From the NCBI GenBank assembly GCA_946965045.2, contig OX337238.1:2046001-2110000 (forward strand): 64,000 bases of DNA, in the 5' to 3' direction. How positions within the stretch are numbered: position 1 is the stretch's first letter; every line of letters starts with the position of its first letter. The translations under genes were made by a program, and so were the position numbers. This stretch comes from Epithemia pelagica. Its lineage: Eukaryota; Protista; Bacillariophyta. The notes under the pieces were generated by a model that had not been told where the DNA came from, ran no database searches, and saw nothing but the letters and a program-made list of their open reading frames with translations. Positions 9,600 through 18,854 of the stretch are shown here, one piece after another.

Positions 9600-10862
9600 C
9601 TCCGCTTCTCGGAGCAACCAGAATCACGCCCTACCTCAATGAGATCAGAGACATACAGGTGGAAGCTTGTGGATGACTTCATTCAAAACTTAAATCAGCA
9701 TCGTGCTTCGCACTTCCAACCTTGCGAACGCATCTGTGTTGACGAATCAATGATCCGTTGGTATGGTTTGGGTGGCCACTGGATAAACATTGGTCTACCA
9801 CAGTACGTGGCAATTGACAGAAAGCCTGAGAATGGATGCGAGATCCAAAACTCTGCTTGAGGTGGATCTGGGATATTTTGTCGTCTCAAGCTTGTCAAGA
9901 CTGCCGAAGAAGATGAATTGAATCATGAGGAGGACGATGACACAACACTCCTCATGAATCATGGGACAGCTGTCCTCAGAGAATGAGTGGAACCATGGGC
10001 TCATTCACAGCGTGTTGTCTGTGCCGACTCCTACTTTGCTTCTGTGAATACGGCAGAGGAGATGGCAAAGATGGGACTCCGATTTATCGGAGTTGTGAAG
10101 ACTGTAACTCGCAAGTATCCAATGGCGTACCTTTCAAACGTTGAACTACTTTCTCGTGGGGATCGCACTGGTCTCATAAGGAAAGATGCAGATGAACAAG
10201 CCACCATGATGGCTTTTGTGTGGATGGATAGGGAATGGCGCTATTTTGTTGCAAATACATCTTCTCTTGCAGAAGGAGAGCCGTACACACGAACAAGGTG
10301 GCGCCAAATTTCAGATGAGGCAGATGCAGAGCCAGAGCGTGTGGAATTGACAGTGGCACAGCCCCAAGCATGTGAGATCTATTACAAGACACGTGGACTA
10401 ATAGATCAGCATAACAGGTGCCGGCAAGACACTCTCAAAATGGAAATCAAAGTGGAAACGAAGCGATGGTGGGTACGTGTGGGGCTTGGAGTGTTCGCAA
10501 TGTGTGTGGTGGACTCTTGGCTTTTGTATTCTGGGGCAACCATGACAAAGGAAAAGCAACAAGACTATTATGCACTGCTTGCAGAGGAATTAATAGACAA
10601 CACATTCGACAGAAGTGGAGTCCCTTGTTCTGCAAGACGAAGAGGACGAGTGAGTGACGGAACAGATAATGCCGAAAGCCCATCAGATCTCATCAATCCA
10701 CGCAGTGGACAAGCAAGGGCAGGCATTGACATCCATCTGAGCCCAACCAAGAGAAGGAGGAAGGTTGATGGAGTTGCAACAAACCAATGTGCACAAGGAA
10801 GATGTAGAGTATGTCAAAAGAAAACAAAGTATATCTGTTCACAGTGTGAAGACACTAGATAG
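9600..10862 (+). pseudogene. piggyBac/PGBD-like transposase, catalytic and C-terminal part
   Basis: Resumes in frame after the TSD (CLR|FSEQP). DDD triad VDESM / ADSYF / IDQHN, Cys-rich tail CRVC..CSQC, in-frame TGA at 9858-9860 and 9984-9986. Confidence 0.92.
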
Positions 10863-11247
10863 ACTCTGCCGTCGCTTTTGTCCATGATAAATCCATCATC
10901 GGAGGACTTCGACTGTTCGACGCATTGAGTGTGGGGTGTGTGGGCGCGTGATTTTGCTTCCAACCCACGTCAGTCATGAGGATTAGTGATTCGATTCTTG
11001 TGCGCACATGCAGCTCGAATTTACGACACATGTGCGACCCGAATATTCACTCATTGTTGGGTCCTCGCCACCAGCCGCCTTGGTCGAGTGGAGGGCGCGG
11101 CAGCTGGAAGAATAGATTCAACCCTTTTTTAGTATCCACATCCTCGCCCAAATTCCTAGAGGCCACGGGAAAAATGCTATGTCATCGATATGAGCACACA
11201 TATCCCTGGGCTGTCCGCTAGGAGGAGATGATAATCTACTAGGAGTA

Positions 11248-12549
11248 CTATGGAATCACCATAGTCATTACAGTCCACTCGTAGTCTTGAACTTCCTCGT
11301 CCTCGTCCCCATAGCCCTCGGTTGCACGCTCAACCATGCAGGAAATAAGCATGACGAGTGTGGGCAATGCTGATCCGCTTGCACCCTCCCCGTCAAGCTT
11401 GTAAAAGATAGGCCGAGTCACAACATCTCCTTTCAGATCAATCAGGTGGGACTCGACCTTCTTCTCCAGACGAATAGCAAGGGTTGTGGTCGCTGCTTGT
11501 TGGTCGTCCGTCTTGATTGCTTCCTTCGTTTCAACAAGGCCAGCAGCCTTGGAACTTGAAACATTTGAAGTTGAGGCACCCGAACGGTCTATCTGACCTT
11601 CAAAGAGTCTCTCTGGATCAAAGAGAAACTCAGGCCATTTGTAGACAATCTTGATCTTTGTGCCATTAAAAACAATCGAAACAGAGATGTCTTCGGCGCG
11701 CGTACCGGATGGAAGGACCACAAAGAAACAAAGACGAAGGTTTTTGTCCTTATCGTGCCAGTAGGAATGTAGCGTGGGCCAGTAGAGGTCCCCTTCTGCC
11801 TTCAGCATCCCTTTCTTACTAGATGCAGCAAGGGTTGTGGTCGCTGCTTGTTAATCGTCCGTCTTGATTGCTTCCTTCGTTTCAACAAGGCCAGCAGCCT
11901 TGGAACTTGAAACATTTGAAGTTGAGGCACCCGAACGGTCTATCTGACCTTCAAAGAGTCTCTCTGGATCAAAGAGAAACTCAGGCCATTTGTAGACAAT
12001 CTTGATCTTTGTGCCATTAAAAACAATCGAAACAGAGATGTCTTTGGCACGCGTACTGGATGGAAGGACCACAAAGAAACAAAGACGAAGGTTTTTGTCC
12101 TTATCGTGCCAGTAGGAATGTAGCGTGGGCCAGTAGAGGTCCCCTTCTGCCTTCAGCATCCCTTTCTTACTAAATGCAGGACAAGCGGTGCTCCGAGGGG
12201 TACATAGTGCTGTAGTGGTGGCAGGAGTACCGCCAACGCCAAAACGAGGTGGGGTAAGAACCCGTCCAGGTGTAGTCGGAGGAGCAGTCAGACCCTCACC
12301 CGCAGCAGCTATACGGCGTGCTCCAGTTGACTCCACCACCTCGTTTGCAGAGCTCAAGTTCCGTTGAACATTCTTCCACGACGAATGGAAGTTTTGGAAC
12401 TTGAGCACATCCCCACTGGAGGCTTCGTACACGACTTTGTACTCCTCCTTTGTTGGATTGGGAGGCATCTTTCCAGATGCAATCTCTTGCCGGACATATT
12501 TGCCCTGCTCTCCCTTCCAGTTGAAAGCCTTTGTTGTTTTCTTTGGCAT
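11248..12549 (-). pseudogene. Harbinger accessory ORF-A: possible HTH/Myb-like N-terminus, S/T/P linker, tandemly duplicated HSP20/alpha-crystallin-like domain
   Basis: ORFs 11851..12549 and 11248..11808 are in one frame, split by one TAA (11851-11853) where the other repeat copy has CAA. The domain assignment is by eye. Confidence 0.6.
11476..12177. repeat. 351-bp in-frame tandem duplication inside ORF-A
   Basis: 11476-11826 versus 11827-12177; 6 differences seen. Confidence 0.95.
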
Positions 12550-13123
12550 GTTGGATTGTTGGTGTTGCTCCTCTCAATATTTGTGCGTACTGGTGTGCTC
12601 GTTTTCAGTTCTGTGGCGGGAACTGAAAACAACCTACTCCTACTAAAGGTGGAATCTCCCAGTCGTGTTCAGTCATGCTGTCTCATGAACATCTACATTC
12701 TACACAGCAGGCAAAACAAATATGCGAGCATTTTAATTAGAACCAGCCATTAATGTTCTTAGTTCTTAGGATGACTGTACGTAGTGGCCACACTCTGAAA
12801 GCTTATGCCCTTGTGGACAACTTCCCTTAACAACATGTGCCTCATGACTCCGAACTTTGCTCTTTTCCTCGTGCTCTGTCTTTCCACCTGCCTCCTGATT
12901 GAGAATGGCAGGATGGTCTGTCCAGCACAGTTTGCCATGATATGGACGATCTCTCTGAGACGCCTTGTCGGCAGACAGGAAGGCAGGGAAGCAAAACCAA
13001 AACTTGTCAAAGCAAGAAGGTAAGAAGGACAAATTAGTATACTACAAGAGGTAGAATACAGACATCATACGTATGTTGCTAGGAGTAGACAAATTGTTAC
13101 TAGTACTCTTACGAGCAGACGGA

Positions 13124-14104
13124 TCACGGGCCTTGACCATTGAATTGGTTTTGGAAGATTGAGAACTGTGTGTCATCATAATCCACATCAAACAGTTTCA
13201 TTTCTCCATTTTCAATTGAGAGCTGGCAAATTACAGCAACGGCACGAAACATGGCTGAGTGTTTGTCAAGAGAATGCTTGTTCTTGTGCAAGCACCGCCA
13301 CTCTTTGAGCCGTGAATTGACGGTCTCGTGTCGGTTTCTGACACGCTGTTGTAGCTCCGCATCTCCTGGAGTTTGTGTGTTGATTTTGGGATTGAGGATT
13401 TTTCTTGGTTCCCCCATATAGCCATCATCCGCTTCTGCTTTTTCGTTTGCGTCCAAAAACCACTTAATAGCATGGCGAAAGATCTTGATGTCAGGCCAGC
13501 GACCGCAAGGAAATGGCCCATGAATCCAAACAATATCTCGTGTACGTAGGCAAAGTCCAACCTCCCACCGTGTACCTGGACCATGAAACTTGTGGCTAAA
13601 CCAGCCCTTCAAGAATGGACGAAATTGTTAGATTGCTATGTCTGTTCCATCGACAGACACCGGTGCATCGTTGAGAATGTCATTAGTGTACCTCTTGTTC
13701 CAACGAATCACCTTAGGCTCAAGAAGAGCAAGCCCATCGATAAAAAGCCAGGCCTACTTCCGAAAGGTCTTGGGGTCAACCCGTCCTCTATCTTCTCCTC
13801 CGGCATCCTTTGCCAAGTCGGACTCATCTGCGTATGTACAAATGAGCATGAGTGCCCATAAGAGATGCTTCGGCTGGGCATTCAGAGGCATCTCCTCTCG
13901 CGCCTCCTGCAAACGATTCCACAAGACACTACAAACAAGGGGGCTTGCCCCAAATTTCTTTCTCCACAGACGCCGAAAGGTCTCCGTGTCAGCGACACGC
14001 CTCTGGAGGATGTTGGATCCAACATCTAAGAACAAGTTTGGCGGGACGTCGTTCATCCTTTGGTTATTAGAGTTTATCGTTCTTTTATGTGGGTTGTCCA
14101 CCAA
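13124..14104 (-). pseudogene. Harbinger/IS5-like DDE transposase (DDE_Tnp_4-like)
   Basis: One frame from ATG 14056 to 13124 with SVDGTD, ADDGY and RHETVN (DDE), WFSHKF and GPFPCG..PD motifs. Premature TAG at 13754-13756 and TAA at 13628-13630. Confidence 0.88.
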
Positions 14105-14337
14105 AACAAATTTGTTGCCTCACTATAGTCACTGGTCACTGGTTCATGATTCATGATATCCGACCTGAGCAAACACCCCAACAAGAAACAAGATGGCAAT
14201 GATCGAGGACGATACAAATTATGATACTAGTACTGTACATGTTTTATCTTTCTTATTAGTTGTCTACATGAATATTATTCTATATATAATGTATATACTA
14301 TTCGTGAAACTTGTTTTTGATTGGGCCTATTTGATGT

Positions 14338-14383
14338 CGTGGTTTTCCCGTTGGCTACTCTTATATCGTGGTTTTCCCGTTGG
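14338..14383. repeat. Two direct copies of CGTGGTTTTCCCGTTGG (period 29) resembling the TIR core
   Basis: 14338-14354 and 14367-14383 share TTTTCCCGT with the right TIR (TTTTTCCCGTGG). Confidence 0.8.
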
Positions 14384-14388
14384 ATATG

Positions 14389-14744
14389 GGATATCCACCA
14401 TGGCCAACATTCAATCGTCATTTTCTCATGATACAGAAGGAATCAGACCAATCCAATCCATGGTCAATTAGACCCCCACAGGGTCTCTCGATGCCACAAC
14501 AGAGATCATGGAAAGAGCTACCATGGCCATCAGGAAATGGATGGGAACTTTGGAAAACCAGACCAAAATGGCCATTTTCACGACTTTCCCATCCATTTCC
14601 TGACGGCCGTGGTAGCTCTTTCCATGATCTCTGTTGTGGCATCGAGAGACCCTGTGGGGGTCTTATTGACCATGGATTGGATTGGTCTGATTCCTTCTGC
14701 AGCATGAGAAAATGACGATTGAATGTTGGCCATGGTGGATATCC
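14389..14744. repeat. Long inverted repeat (159-bp arms, 38-nt spacer)
   Basis: 14389-14547 is the reverse complement of 14586-14744 with about 5 mismatches. The spacer contains the palindrome AAAATGGCCATTTT. Confidence 0.97.
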
Positions 14745-15617
14745 ATTGATATCACATTTTCCAGGGAGGTGCAAGGGCTCAACAGAGGTGCGCCGAAACC
14801 ATCTGCCTGTTCGAAATAATTGCCCTTACCAAACTAGCAGTATAAGTAGTATAACAAGTAGGAGTAGACTACAAGAATAGGGGCAGTTATTCTCGGCAGT
14901 ATTATATTATTTCTTGCCCCACTCTACAGAGACATAGACTCTCTCTCCTCTCTCGAGAGACGCGCAGCATATGGTCTTAGTCCACGTCAGAGATCAAAAT
15001 GACCTGGTTGATTGGTTGTGTTATCATCTCTGGTTTTAACATTTTTATTCGGCAATATTGTCTGTTTATCATTCTTTCTCTTCTGTGTTCACAATGGATG
15101 GCCCTTGTCAGCTGTCAGTCTTGGGTCTTGGCTCTTGGCATCTGAAAGAGAGTAGTATGATTTTTTCCTGACGACTGGTCCTGCAGCAGAGACATCTTTG
15201 ACGTCGAACATTAGAACAAACAATACAATAATGTCAAGGGTGACTATCACGGCCATATTAATAGTATTCTATTTCTTATTTCTAGTTCTCAGACACTGTC
15301 CGGATTGGAGATGACAGATGACTAACCATCGGTGCAGCAGAGAATGAGCCAAATCATGCAACTCGTTAAAATGGTAGGGGTGGGCACTACTGAGGAGGCA
15401 GAGCGATCACACTTTCCCTCCACAAAGCAGCAGTCCATACAACAAACCACACAACGAGGCGCTTAGACATGCTTTTCATTCACAGTCTGGTTCCATCTGC
15501 AACTTTGGAATGAGCTCAAGCCAACAATCAAACTTTACTCATTATGTTTGCAGATCTTTGTTCGACTGCTGTTGGTGCTGAACTGCTTGCGATCAACTAC
15601 TTCTTGTTGTAAGTCAA

Positions 15618-17409
15618 ATGGGTGTTCGACATGCTTACCTTTCAATTGTCGAGAAGTTTCAGTGCGGGCAATGGGATGCAGAGTGTTGCACCAAAGCCCA
15701 AATCCAGACTTGCTTCAATCATTCAGGGGGACTAGGGGTCGATTTTGAAGTATTTGCGACGCTCTATCGACGAGCTGCATGCGAGAAGATAACTCTCAGC
15801 TGGAAGGAAACGCGTCTACAAGAAAAGGCAGGAAAGGCACCACGCCAGATGAATGTCCCTCAAGGAGGTGTGTTTGATTGTTGCTTCTTGTCTTCAACTC
15901 TTGATCTCACCAATGTTCTTCCTGTTCTTCCCATGTAGCAGTGCCACGGAAAGCCAACATGTTTGCGGGACCTTACCGTGACCAAAATGACAGTGACGAC
16001 AATGATGACTACAACTCTGCTGATGCGGATGAAGAGGAGAATCGCCTCCTTCAGCGGGACAATGAAGTTGCCTACAGTCAAGTCGGTCATACTGGTGGTA
16101 CTACACCAGGTGGAGATGGGGGGTTTGTTGTGGTTCCTGGTGGTGAGATGCAACACCTGACAGCAGAGATGCAACGTACGCACCTTAGTCCGCAGAAGAT
16201 GGTCGCTGTTGTGGAAGGAGCTAACGCTCCTTTTCTGTTGTCTTCTCGGCATGGAAGGCTCATGATGGGCAAACGCGTTTCTCCCTCGCCATGAACCTCC
16301 TTTCTGGCGTGGAGCCCAAGTCCATGACACCCTGTGTTGCCGAAGGTGGTTCCGGCGTGCAGTTGAAGCTCAAATGGCCAAAGGCAACCATGAGTGTGGC
16401 CCAGTTGGTCCCAATCAAGTTTCTTGGACTGTTGCATCGCTATGGGCATACAACAGTTCCCCCACCTACCGAAGAATCTGACTTGAGGGACTATCCATTT
16501 CAAACCGTGCCAGTTGTATCTGGCTTGGTAGCTCAGATTGAGAAATGGAAGAACAAGAAGTTGATCCCAGGGGAAGACAATCGCCCTACAATGACAATCA
16601 ACCTGAAATCACCTTTCAAGCTGGAGCCTGTTCCCATTGGCAACACTTTTGAGTTGCATGGGCTCCAAGGTGACGTGGTTACGAAGAGACAGCATGGCTA
16701 CTGGTCGGGTGTGCTTCTCCTTGAGTGTGAAGGAGAACGCAACACTTTTCAAAAGCCTGTTGGACCAGAAAGCTACCGATTCATACGCCAATGCAATGGT
16801 GGATGGGCAATTACGCAAGACACGGATGAACTCATGGAAGATGTCAATATTGAGGGTGAACGAATGGTGCATCAAACAAAACGAACACGACCAAGTATCC
16901 AGCGTCCAACCATCGAAGCAAACGATCTTCTTATCGAGAATGAGAGCCTCAAGTCACAGCTTGAGGCAGCTCAGAATGCCCATTCAGATGCTGTCCGTCA
17001 ACTTCTTCAAAAAGAAAAGGATGTCATGGATTTGAAAGCTAGCAAACTCAAGATCCGAACAGAGCTGGCTAACGCCAACTCAGCTTTGGAGCAAGTACAA
17101 CGAGAGGCTGAGACTCACGCTCGTGCTGTACAAGATGCTCTAGGCCATGCCTATACGAAGGCTTACGGAGATGGGAAAGCATTGGTTTCAATGGCTGAAC
17201 ATGCGGTGTCAAGTGTCGAGGCCTGCTTGAATGCAGCCTCCACCAAGCAGGGTGATGTAGTTGTTGCCAAACATGCCTCAAATGCTCGTAACCATGTTAC
17301 CGAGCCAAACAATAAGTTGGCTGAAATGCATGGTCATATCTCAACGTCCGCCACTAGTACTGTGTCTGTCAATTCTGAAGTTGTTGATGACTACGATGAT
17401 ATGCATTAA
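15618..17409 (+). pseudogene. Harbinger accessory ORF-B: paralog of the ORF-A domain plus C-terminal coiled coil
   Basis: A GT..AG intron at 15868-15938 joins ORF 15618 in frame to ORF 15941. A frameshift near 16225-16240 leads into SAWKAHDGQTRFSLAMNLLSG...KWP and ORF 16291..17409. The true start is uncertain. Confidence 0.55.
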
Positions 17410-17640
17410 GAAAAAGATCTTACCCGAGCCGAAGCAAGGAAAGTATACGTAGTATGGTAGCAGTAACATAAGAGACCTGACAAACAAGTAATGATCCTCT
17501 ACTGTTGTTGCATGTGAAGCAACTTCTTTGTCGTCACAAAGTTTATCCTTCTCTTCTCTCGTGAAGGACAGAAGATAACTTGAGCAAAAATGGTGACTCC
17601 TAGCTACATACTCCTAGCATTTTTCCCGTGGCCTCCTAGA

Positions 17641-18383
17641 CACCCCCTAGCGGGGGTGGCTAAGAGGGTTTAATTTCGTGTAGCCACCCCCATCTCTCTG
17701 GTGTCCGGTCTAGTCGGCAGGCATATCTCATTTTCACAACCACGATAACAACACGACAATCAAACTTTGTTGTTGCTGGTGACCTCCTATGATCACCCCA
17801 TCATGATCCGACCATCGTGGGATTCATATTAGTACCATGGTAGTGCATTGTGAGCGGCACAGTGCATGAGGGTCACTCTAGGCAAGGATGAAAATAGTGG
17901 CCCAGCATTATGGCACGACACGAGACCATGATGGCCCCAAAACCCCATGGGAATAGAGGTCCTGCTGTCGATACACTCCGTTACTACTGTTATGTATATT
18001 GTGTACCATTAGGTGTCGAAATAATGAATAATAAGAGCCATACATGCCTCTGAGATGCTTCGTTCGAAATGGTGAGGCGTTGCTTCCGTATGACCGTGCC
18101 ACGAGGCATGGTGCCTGTGAACCAGCTCCACAATAGACTCAACCTTCATATTTTGGCCATGCAGATGTATCCTACGCTATTGGTTAGAGGCCTATGACTC
18201 GCCCGACAGGTACCAAGTGTCAAAATAGGTGCACAACAACAGGTGCAACACCGAGGTCCGTGTTGTTATCGCAATGGATGGAATGAGATATGCCTGCCGA
18301 CTAGAAACAGGTTATTTTTCCACCAGAGAGATGGGGGTGTTTCAACGAAATTACAACCTCAAAAACACCCCCGCTAGGGGGTG
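17641..18383. mobile_element. Putative MITE (about 745 bp)
   Basis: Perfect 18-bp inverted termini CACCCCCTAGCGGGGGTG / CACCCCCGCTAGGGGGTG, with weaker inverted similarity extending about 20 bp inward. No coding capacity; TSD not resolved. Confidence 0.6.
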
Positions 18384-18854
18384 CCTCGTAGAGAGCCTCC
18401 TATGGGCATTGGGCATAGTAAATGCCGACCGCGAAACCAACTGCATTACCATCCTTGCTCTCCGTACCCCACTCTATCTCTATCGAACTCACTCCGAAGA
18501 TACTCCCACTAAGACAGAGTCAACGTCCGAAAGTAAAGAGACGTGTAACGAAACAAACATTCCCGCCAGATTCACTTCATGTGCTCTGTGGAGCATCGCA
18601 TGGAGTGGACAAGGAATCAACCACAGTCATTCTAGACAAAAGCTAAAAAAGTTGTCCAAAGCACAACGCACAGCCAACTTGTTGCAAAGAGCTTGATCAT
18701 CTCGGTTGCCTCAAGTTGCCTCCTTATCCGAAGTGTCGTGAATTTGGTACACATTGAGTGGCATGGCAACTTCCTGATTGCGTTTCTTCTTTGTTACCAT
18801 CTACCGGTCAAACAATTTAAGACATTCAGCAATAAGCCCTCGAGATAAGATACA

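Follow-up and report, generated by a model that had tools for sequence, protein, structure and literature searches.

A probable PIF/Harbinger-type transposon family of diatoms with two paralogous accessory genes and a predicted HSP20/CS-like domain

The locus presented here raises the question of whether a diatom DNA transposon can carry genes for its own proteins of a chaperone-type fold. It lies in a stretch of 64,000 nucleotides from Epithemia pelagica (assembly GCA_946965045.2, contig OX337238.1, positions 2,046,001 to 2,110,000 of the forward strand), which we refer to as the window and whose coordinates we use throughout. The initial annotation of the window had described a Harbinger-like transposon with two paralogous accessory genes, open reading frame (ORF) A and ORF-B, both resembling HSP20/alpha-crystallin proteins. 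We consider it probable that the segment 11159-17635 represents a decayed and non-autonomous copy from a diatom transposon family of the PIF/Harbinger superfamily whose intact members encode a transposase together with two paralogues, ORF-A and ORF-B, that have a sandwich domain in common. The following features delimit the element and divide it.

11159-17635: PIF/Harbinger-type DNA transposon, recognised by terminal inverted repeats (TIRs), CTA duplication and DDE_Tnp_4-type transposase
11156-11158: left target-site duplication (TSD) CTA, directly outside the left TIR
11159-11179, plus strand: left TIR GAGGCCACGGGAAAAATGCTA, 21 nt
17615-17635, minus strand: right TIR, 21 nt
17636-17638: right TSD CTA, directly outside the right TIR
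13157-14056, minus strand: PIF/Harbinger-type (DDE_Tnp_4) transposase pseudogene, single frame
14389-14744: central hairpin of 356 bp between the divergent gene sets, with 159-nt arms that are 97% complementary

The two TIRs are 21 nt each and 100% complementary, and the CTA duplication is present at both ends as annotated. Across the 64 kb the TIR sequence has only 2 matches at up to 3 mismatches, compared to 0 expected. A DDE_Tnp_4 transposase, a 3-bp duplication and short TIRs are all present, which agrees with the assignment to Harbinger-like elements, and the transposase, ORF-A and ORF-B lie inside one element, so that the description as a three-gene transposon holds as well. Both haplotigs of the source assembly contain the same broken copy in identical flanks and the insertion is therefore old.

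Related elements show what the intact genes look like. Homologues of ORF-A and ORF-B sit on large ENA contigs and in metagenomes. The search for intact copies was successful: the locus L001, which shares the assembly ERZ21939226 with the window, is an intact sister element of 5451 bp. Its TIRs (GAAGCTACGGGAAAAACGAGATGT, 24 nt, 92%) are related to those of the window by a common 16-nt core, GARGCYACGGGAAAAA, which forms the first 16 nt of the left TIR, and its TSD (TCG) has the same length of 3 bp. L001 contains ORF-B (P0010, called at 572 aa), an inverted repeat at its centre, the transposase (307 aa) and ORF-A (P0002, 338 aa). The window is collinear with it over all coding parts at 68-73% nucleotide identity. 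On the protein level we detected 70% identity for the transposase pseudogene (E 3e-147), 60-73% for ORF-A and 50% over 396 aa for ORF-B. The inverted repeat of L001 (8227-8570) is at the position equivalent to the central hairpin of the window, and the two are 76-89% similar over short patches.

The L001 transposase matched Pfam PF13359 (DDE_Tnp_4) with 25.7 bits at a cutoff of 24.8. The transposase proteins of two further loci, L002 and L006, fell below PF13359 detection when scanned alone, and the transposase clade is thus a divergent one. It comprises 596 detectable homologues, and among those listed about half carry PF13359; the named homologues come from six diatom genera (Mayamaea, Fistulifera, Amphora, Thalassiosira, Chaetoceros and Cylindrotheca). 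Apart from DDE_Tnp_4, and DDE_Tnp_1_7 outside the element, no Pfam model was matched by any of the scanned ORFs.

The accessory genes travel with this transposase. In L002, which belongs to another assembly, the three genes keep the order of L001, with ORF-B truncated, and in the metagenomic L006 the transposase is followed by ORF-A. ORF-A adjoins the transposase at all three loci, with ORF-B across the other side in L001 and L002. Clustering at 90% identity gave 7, 6 and 7 members for transposase, ORF-A and ORF-B of the L001 type and 91, 71 and 87 for the L002 type, and such matched sizes are what co-amplification as one unit predicts. More distant elements carry the domain too: accessory-domain genes stand divergently beside the transposase in a Mayamaea locus (L011; E 2e-8 and 4.5e-5) and a single such gene does so in a Fistulifera locus (L012; E 1e-3). 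The co-occurrence suggested by the initial annotation was thus found at the L001, L002, L006, Mayamaea and Fistulifera loci, and judged by gene order the accessory genes are integral to the element family.

The Mayamaea locus (Mayamaea pseudoterrestris BROI01000027.1, 3946-10109) has two tandem transposase genes and, on the opposite strand, two tandem accessory-domain genes, which points to copies of a two-gene relative that are nested or stand in tandem.

The earlier picture of the reading frames had to be revised for all three genes of the window. The transposase frame is interrupted by two in-frame stops (TAG at 13754-13756 and TAA at 13628-13630), ORF-A is one frame with a duplication and a nonsense codon and ORF-B consists of two exons with a frameshift. 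The accessory genes are made up as follows.

11248-12549, minus strand: ORF-A pseudogene, in one frame that runs from 12573 to 11248, with an N-terminal helical domain, a linker and an HSP20-like domain
11476-12177, minus strand: in-frame 351-bp tandem duplication, with units 11827-12177 and 11476-11826 that differ by 6 mismatches
11851-11853, minus strand: ORF-A nonsense codon, TAA in the first duplication unit and CAA in the second
11248-11808, minus strand: complete HSP20/alpha-crystallin-like domain of ORF-A, the 186-aa ORF used for modelling
15618-15867, plus strand: ORF-B exon 1, with a conserved N-terminal domain of ~70 aa (W-D..C....F...LYRRA.CE.IT..WK.TR)
15868-15938, plus strand: predicted ORF-B intron of 71 nt (GT..AG), the removal of which joins both exon frames
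15939-17409, plus strand: ORF-B exon 2, coding for an acidic linker, an HSP20-like domain interrupted by a long insert (~16231-16850) and a helical C-terminal region

Through the 351-bp duplication the first half of the HSP20-like domain is present twice in ORF-A. The domain encoded by exon 1 of ORF-B is kept in L001, L002, L003 and L008, and the GGTGTG donor context of the predicted intron is also seen in the relatives. Relative to L001 a 1-nt deletion near 16229 causes the frameshift in ORF-B.

The paralogy of the two genes had been proposed from an ungapped alignment over 45 residues with 11 identities, a number that we confirmed by hand count. The downstream similarities LKGDVVTR/LQGDVVTK and C..ER proved to be colinear in a BLASTP alignment with an E-value of 0.003. 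As this pairwise value is weak alone, profile tests were run with two narrow profiles (A2 and A3), a profile of the ORF-B domain (A4) and a 33-sequence alignment of the domain in the wider family (A5). In hhalign the narrow profiles A3 and A2 aligned with an E-value of 1.8e-4, and A5 aligned to A4 with a probability of 96.5% (E 7.5e-10) over 149 columns across the whole domain. An exhaustive HMMER search of 1.84 billion representative proteins with the ORF-A profile returned 97 matches, which include the ORF-B-type proteins P0069 (611 aa, E 1.5e-8), P0083 and P0106; against the ORF-B domain profile these three reach values of 1e-31 to 1e-44. With tblastn, P0002 (ORF-A) also detected L003, the locus of P0069, at an E-value of 1.9e-12. 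On this profile evidence the domain common to ORF-A and ORF-B is homologous, and the claim of two paralogous accessory genes is solid for this one domain. Both proteins have in addition their own N-terminal helical domain and ORF-B has a long C-terminal helical region, and thus they are not pure HSP20 proteins. The N-terminal domains of ORF-A and ORF-B reached an hhalign probability of only 15% (E 0.0017) and full-length paralogy is not established.

To identify the fold of the shared domain we used an AlphaFold2 model of the 186-aa ORF-A domain ORF of the window, computed with A5 (pLDDT 86.6, pTM 0.77). In the model five strands are followed by a helical insert (residues 60-98) and then by three further strands, a sandwich of the HSP20/CS type as had been suspected. 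From the order of the strands we infer that the insert between the fifth and the sixth modelled strand corresponds to the beta5-beta7 loop of small heat-shock proteins. A full-length AlphaFold model of P0002 computed with 4 sequences had a pLDDT of 43 and was left out of the fold search. When we searched the PDB with Foldseek, small heat-shock proteins stood almost alone among the top matches with a probability of 1.0. Among the Swiss-Prot models we again found small heat-shock proteins, together with the alpha-crystallin domains (ACDs) of Arabidopsis ARID3/5/6 and, at rank 20, IDM2. The TM-scores of Foldseek were modest (0.3-0.6) because of the insert of ~45 residues in the domain. VIA-align gave a Z of 10.5 for MjHSP16.5 and a Z of 9.6 for the Sulfolobus Hsp20.1 ACD (SsHsp20.1), the latter with a root-mean-square deviation (rmsd) of 2.1 Å over 83 of 87 residues. 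CS domains gave Z values of 7.5-9.2 at an rmsd of 2.3-2.6 Å, among them PIH1D1 (Z 9.2) and Sgt1 (Z 8.5, rmsd 2.5 Å). A wide VIA-align search, independent of Foldseek, placed the HSP20/CS superfamily in nearly all of the top 48 rows, and an ESM Atlas shape search agrees on the same superfamily.

On the sequence level, the best match of the A5 profile among 177,635 PDB sequences was 4rzk, the Hsp20.1 ACD, with a marginal E-value of 0.02. The alignment contains the hallmark motif G...EDI.V.V..GG..L.I and, weakly, I.LP..VE. No meaningful match among the PDB sequences came from the narrow profiles A3 and A4. Of 100 matches by the language-model features of P0002, 86 were to CS clusters, with a score of 0.80 that we treat as lead level only; the features of the ORF-B domain gave no usable lead (score 0.66). 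Taken together, the shared domain is predicted to be a new, divergent family of the HSP20/CS superfamily. Of the earlier claim of an HSP20/CS-like domain, the beta-sandwich stands as a high-confidence prediction for the ORF-A model, and a Pfam HSP20 or CS match is lacking.

The best matches among the AlphaFold DB clusters are the uncharacterised proteins E9I5P2, A0A1E7F477, A0A1Z5KEE5, A0A6A4Z583 and A0A164GFT0, ahead of annotated small heat-shock proteins. A0A1Z5KEE5 and the gene that adjoins the transposase in L012 of Fistulifera have the same length (402 aa).

Two readings would deprive these results of their meaning. The resemblance of ORF-A and ORF-B and the fold could be artefacts of weak similarity and of a model biased by its alignment, and we can see where such a suspicion comes from: the BLASTP E-value is only 0.003, the first model from 4 sequences had a pLDDT of 43 and the TM-scores are modest. 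However, the ORF-A profile found an ORF-B-type protein at a whole-library E-value of 1.5e-8, the hhalign probability is 96.5%, tblastn linked P0002 to L003, the insert accounts for the low TM-scores and three independent structure searches lead to one superfamily. A chance similarity of ORF-A and ORF-B is rejected on the profile searches, hhalign and the converging structure searches, and we regard an artefact as very improbable. The genes could also stem from a one-off capture of host genes by a single element and have no role in transposition, a reading for which the distant members P0068-P0111 leave room as they lie on short contigs with their context unseen. Against it, the same gene order occurs at four independent loci in at least two assemblies and two metagenomes, and protein identities of 40-70% between loci exclude a single recent chimera. 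Together with the matched cluster sizes of transposase and accessory genes and the presence of the domain in the Mayamaea and Fistulifera elements, where the linkage recurs, this largely refutes one-off capture, to which we give as little credit as to the artefact.

If the two genes belong to the element, the question is what their proteins would do. Classical Harbinger transposition requires an accessory protein for the binding of the element ends and the recruitment of the transposase (PMC5339849). We propose tentatively that ORF-A and ORF-B replace the Myb-like accessory protein of classical Harbingers and act as end-binding, transposase-recruiting and oligomerising adaptors that pair through their sandwich domains. 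In intact members such as L001, ORF-A lies downstream of the transposase on the same strand and ORF-B is transcribed divergently across the central hairpin. Each paralogue combines a small helical domain at the N-terminus with a linker, which is acidic or of low complexity, and with the predicted divergent HSP20-like sandwich and its insert; in ORF-B the insert is longer and a helical tail is present at the C-terminus. End binding would fall to the N-terminal domains. Sandwich and helical tail together would contact the transposase and join ORF-A to ORF-B, so that the transposition complex could assemble. A beta-sandwich of the HSP20/CS kind is a usual module of protein-protein contact and dimerisation. 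The low-confidence full-length P0002 model shows three N-terminal helices, and the language-model features of the ORF-A N-terminus gave only weak Myb/helix-turn-helix leads of 0.5-0.58. The helical C-terminus of ORF-B hit only coiled-coil families in the Pfam scan, all of them sub-threshold, and the tail is probably a coiled coil.

Other roles of the sandwich have to be weighed against the adaptor. It might act in the manner of the CS domains of Sgt1, p23 and PIH1D1 and recruit Hsp90-family machinery that folds or stabilises the transposase. CS domains superpose nearly as well as ACDs and the language-model features of P0002 lead to CS clusters, but their score is lead level only, PF04969 is not matched and the sole sequence-level signal goes to an HSP20 ACD. 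The long loop insert would also sit at a position typical for small heat-shock proteins and not for CS domains; CS domains are not known to have a long insert there. We therefore rate Hsp90 recruitment as unlikely. Slightly less likely still is that the crystallin-fold proteins act for the element itself as chaperones or anti-silencing factors and shield it from heterochromatin or DNA methylation in the manner of IDM2/IDM3. The HSP20-like fold and the matches to IDM2 and the ARID3/5/6 ACDs would fit such a role, as would the observation that the Harbinger-derived HDP1/HDP2 of Arabidopsis co-purify with IDM2/IDM3; however, HDP1/HDP2 did not bind IDM2/IDM3 directly (PMC5339849). IDM2 appears only at rank 20 among generic small heat-shock proteins, we found no sequence relationship to IDM proteins and nothing in our analysis is related to chromatin. 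Among the roles we thus place the adaptor first, followed by Hsp90 recruitment and then anti-silencing.

The parallel to the Arabidopsis IDM complex, drawn by the initial annotation, survives in part. In both cases Harbinger-type and alpha-crystallin-fold proteins would belong to one functional unit, and IDM2 is among the fold matches. The plant genes are host genes in a histone acetyltransferase complex, whereas the diatom crystallin-fold proteins are encoded by the transposon; beyond the fold we found no homology between IDM2/IDM3 and the diatom domain, and the element has no histone acetyltransferase gene. As the HDPs did not contact IDM2/IDM3 directly, the analogy is a loose one, suggestive and unproven. 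A bolder version would be that the functional partnership of Harbinger-type transposases with alpha-crystallin-fold proteins is ancient and that the diatom transposon encodes a heterodimeric ORF-A/ORF-B adaptor which could also counteract host silencing. We consider this improbable, more so than either of the alternative roles above; if it were true, HDP1/HDP2 and IDM2/IDM3 of the plant complex would echo a transposon-borne module and their association would not be a coincidence.

Several observations weigh against the interpretation of the window as a member of a PIF/Harbinger family with two sandwich-domain adaptors. The TSD of PIF/Harbinger elements is typically TWA, and CTA and TCG deviate from this. 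The copy in the window is inactive, with damage in the transposase, ORF-A and ORF-B alike; as a pseudogenised relic it therefore encodes none of the proposed functions itself. A Chaetoceros relative of the transposase (L013) stands without a detectable accessory homologue. No Pfam HSP20 (PF00011), CS (PF04969) or Myb model matched ORF-A, ORF-B, their intact homologues or 20 distant relatives even at an E-value of 10, so that membership in the HSP20/CS superfamily rests on the predicted fold and the marginal sequence match. The modelled domain is that of ORF-A, and the fold of ORF-B is assigned by homology. The profiles of the N-terminal domains (A7 and A8) had no PDB match, and since no relatives were identified, DNA binding by these domains is a guess. 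Contigs from 3 runs of unstated type are collinear with the genome, unspliced and free of joints and hence look like DNA.

Compared to known systems, the diatom elements have the DDE_Tnp_4 transposase, the 3-bp TSD, the short TIRs and a separate accessory gene in common with Harbinger3_DR and the plant PIF/Pong elements. They differ in having two accessory genes in place of the single Myb/SANT-like gene of classical elements. Neither accessory protein matches a Myb/SANT model and both carry the HSP20-like sandwich, that of ORF-B by homology. The genes are divergent around a conserved central hairpin, the transposase is short (~307 aa) and the TSDs are not of the TWA type. With small heat-shock proteins (PF00011; MjHSP16.5, Sulfolobus Hsp20.1) the domain shares the predicted beta-sandwich topology and the two motifs named above. 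Unlike these proteins it has no Pfam-level match and no evident IXI tail, its sandwich halves are separated by a helical insert of ~45 residues that is longer in ORF-B, and it is fused to other domains and encoded by a transposon. CS/p23 domains (PF04969; Sgt1, PIH1D1, Shq1, NudC) have the fold of the superfamily, in this case without a sequence match; they are protein-protein adaptors within multi-domain proteins, the same mode that we favour for the diatom proteins.

Further features were noted in and around the element. An acidic tail closes the proteins of the ORF-A family, with D-[YF]-E conserved as its last residues in the 33-sequence alignment A5, and ORF-A of the window extends 9 residues beyond this usual end (11248-11290). 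Comparable acidic-aromatic tails (DDYDDM, DFDDFD) occur in ORF-B proteins. The central hairpin may serve as a promoter in both directions or have a structural role. The octamer CTAGGAGT was observed 9 times in the window, compared to 0.7 expected. Four of these copies are in the element (11239 and 13079 on the plus strand, 17596 and 17610 on the minus strand), and three of the four are within 90 nt of the element ends and face inward. These copies may serve as subterminal binding sites; the octamer was not found within the L001 element. The assembler word depth is ~390 at 12150-14310, which covers the transposase and the N-terminal half of ORF-A, and ~160 at 14715-17199 in the ORF-B half (~2.4x), and a contig branch at 14310 accompanies this difference. 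Depth and branch hint that other places of the genome hold further copies, partial and nearly identical, with no copy number to be read from a depth that has no baseline.

The surroundings of the element are rich in transposons. The right TIR is adjoined by a second inverted-repeat structure (17633-18391), by appearance an insertion of the miniature inverted-repeat transposable element kind, with arms at 17633-17703/18321-18391 (82%) and 17709-17755/18259-18305 (83%). About 300 bp to the left of the element lies a PiggyBac-type transposase fragment (9987-10862, plus strand; DDE_Tnp_1_7, E 5.4e-15); a zinc-finger-like CxxC motif is present at its C-terminus. The segment 22001-24000 of the window has an extreme composition skew (GC skew 0.75, AT skew -0.82).

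In the literature that we searched we found no account of a Harbinger element whose accessory genes encode a crystallin-type fold, and where diatom papers mention Harbinger elements they do so only briefly. The partner of the transposase appears to be built differently in this diatom clade, with a small helical domain and an HSP20-like sandwich in place of the Myb-like protein, and in one lineage the partner gene appears to have been duplicated into two paralogues that then diverged. The clade would thus be a testable case of the replacement and diversification of a transposon accessory protein. It would also add to the HSP20/CS superfamily a divergent, transposon-borne branch that sequence models miss, and may place a set of diatom proteins listed as "uncharacterised" in a proposed functional context. 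The intact L001 offers ready material for transposition and binding assays and is possibly a genetic tool for diatoms.

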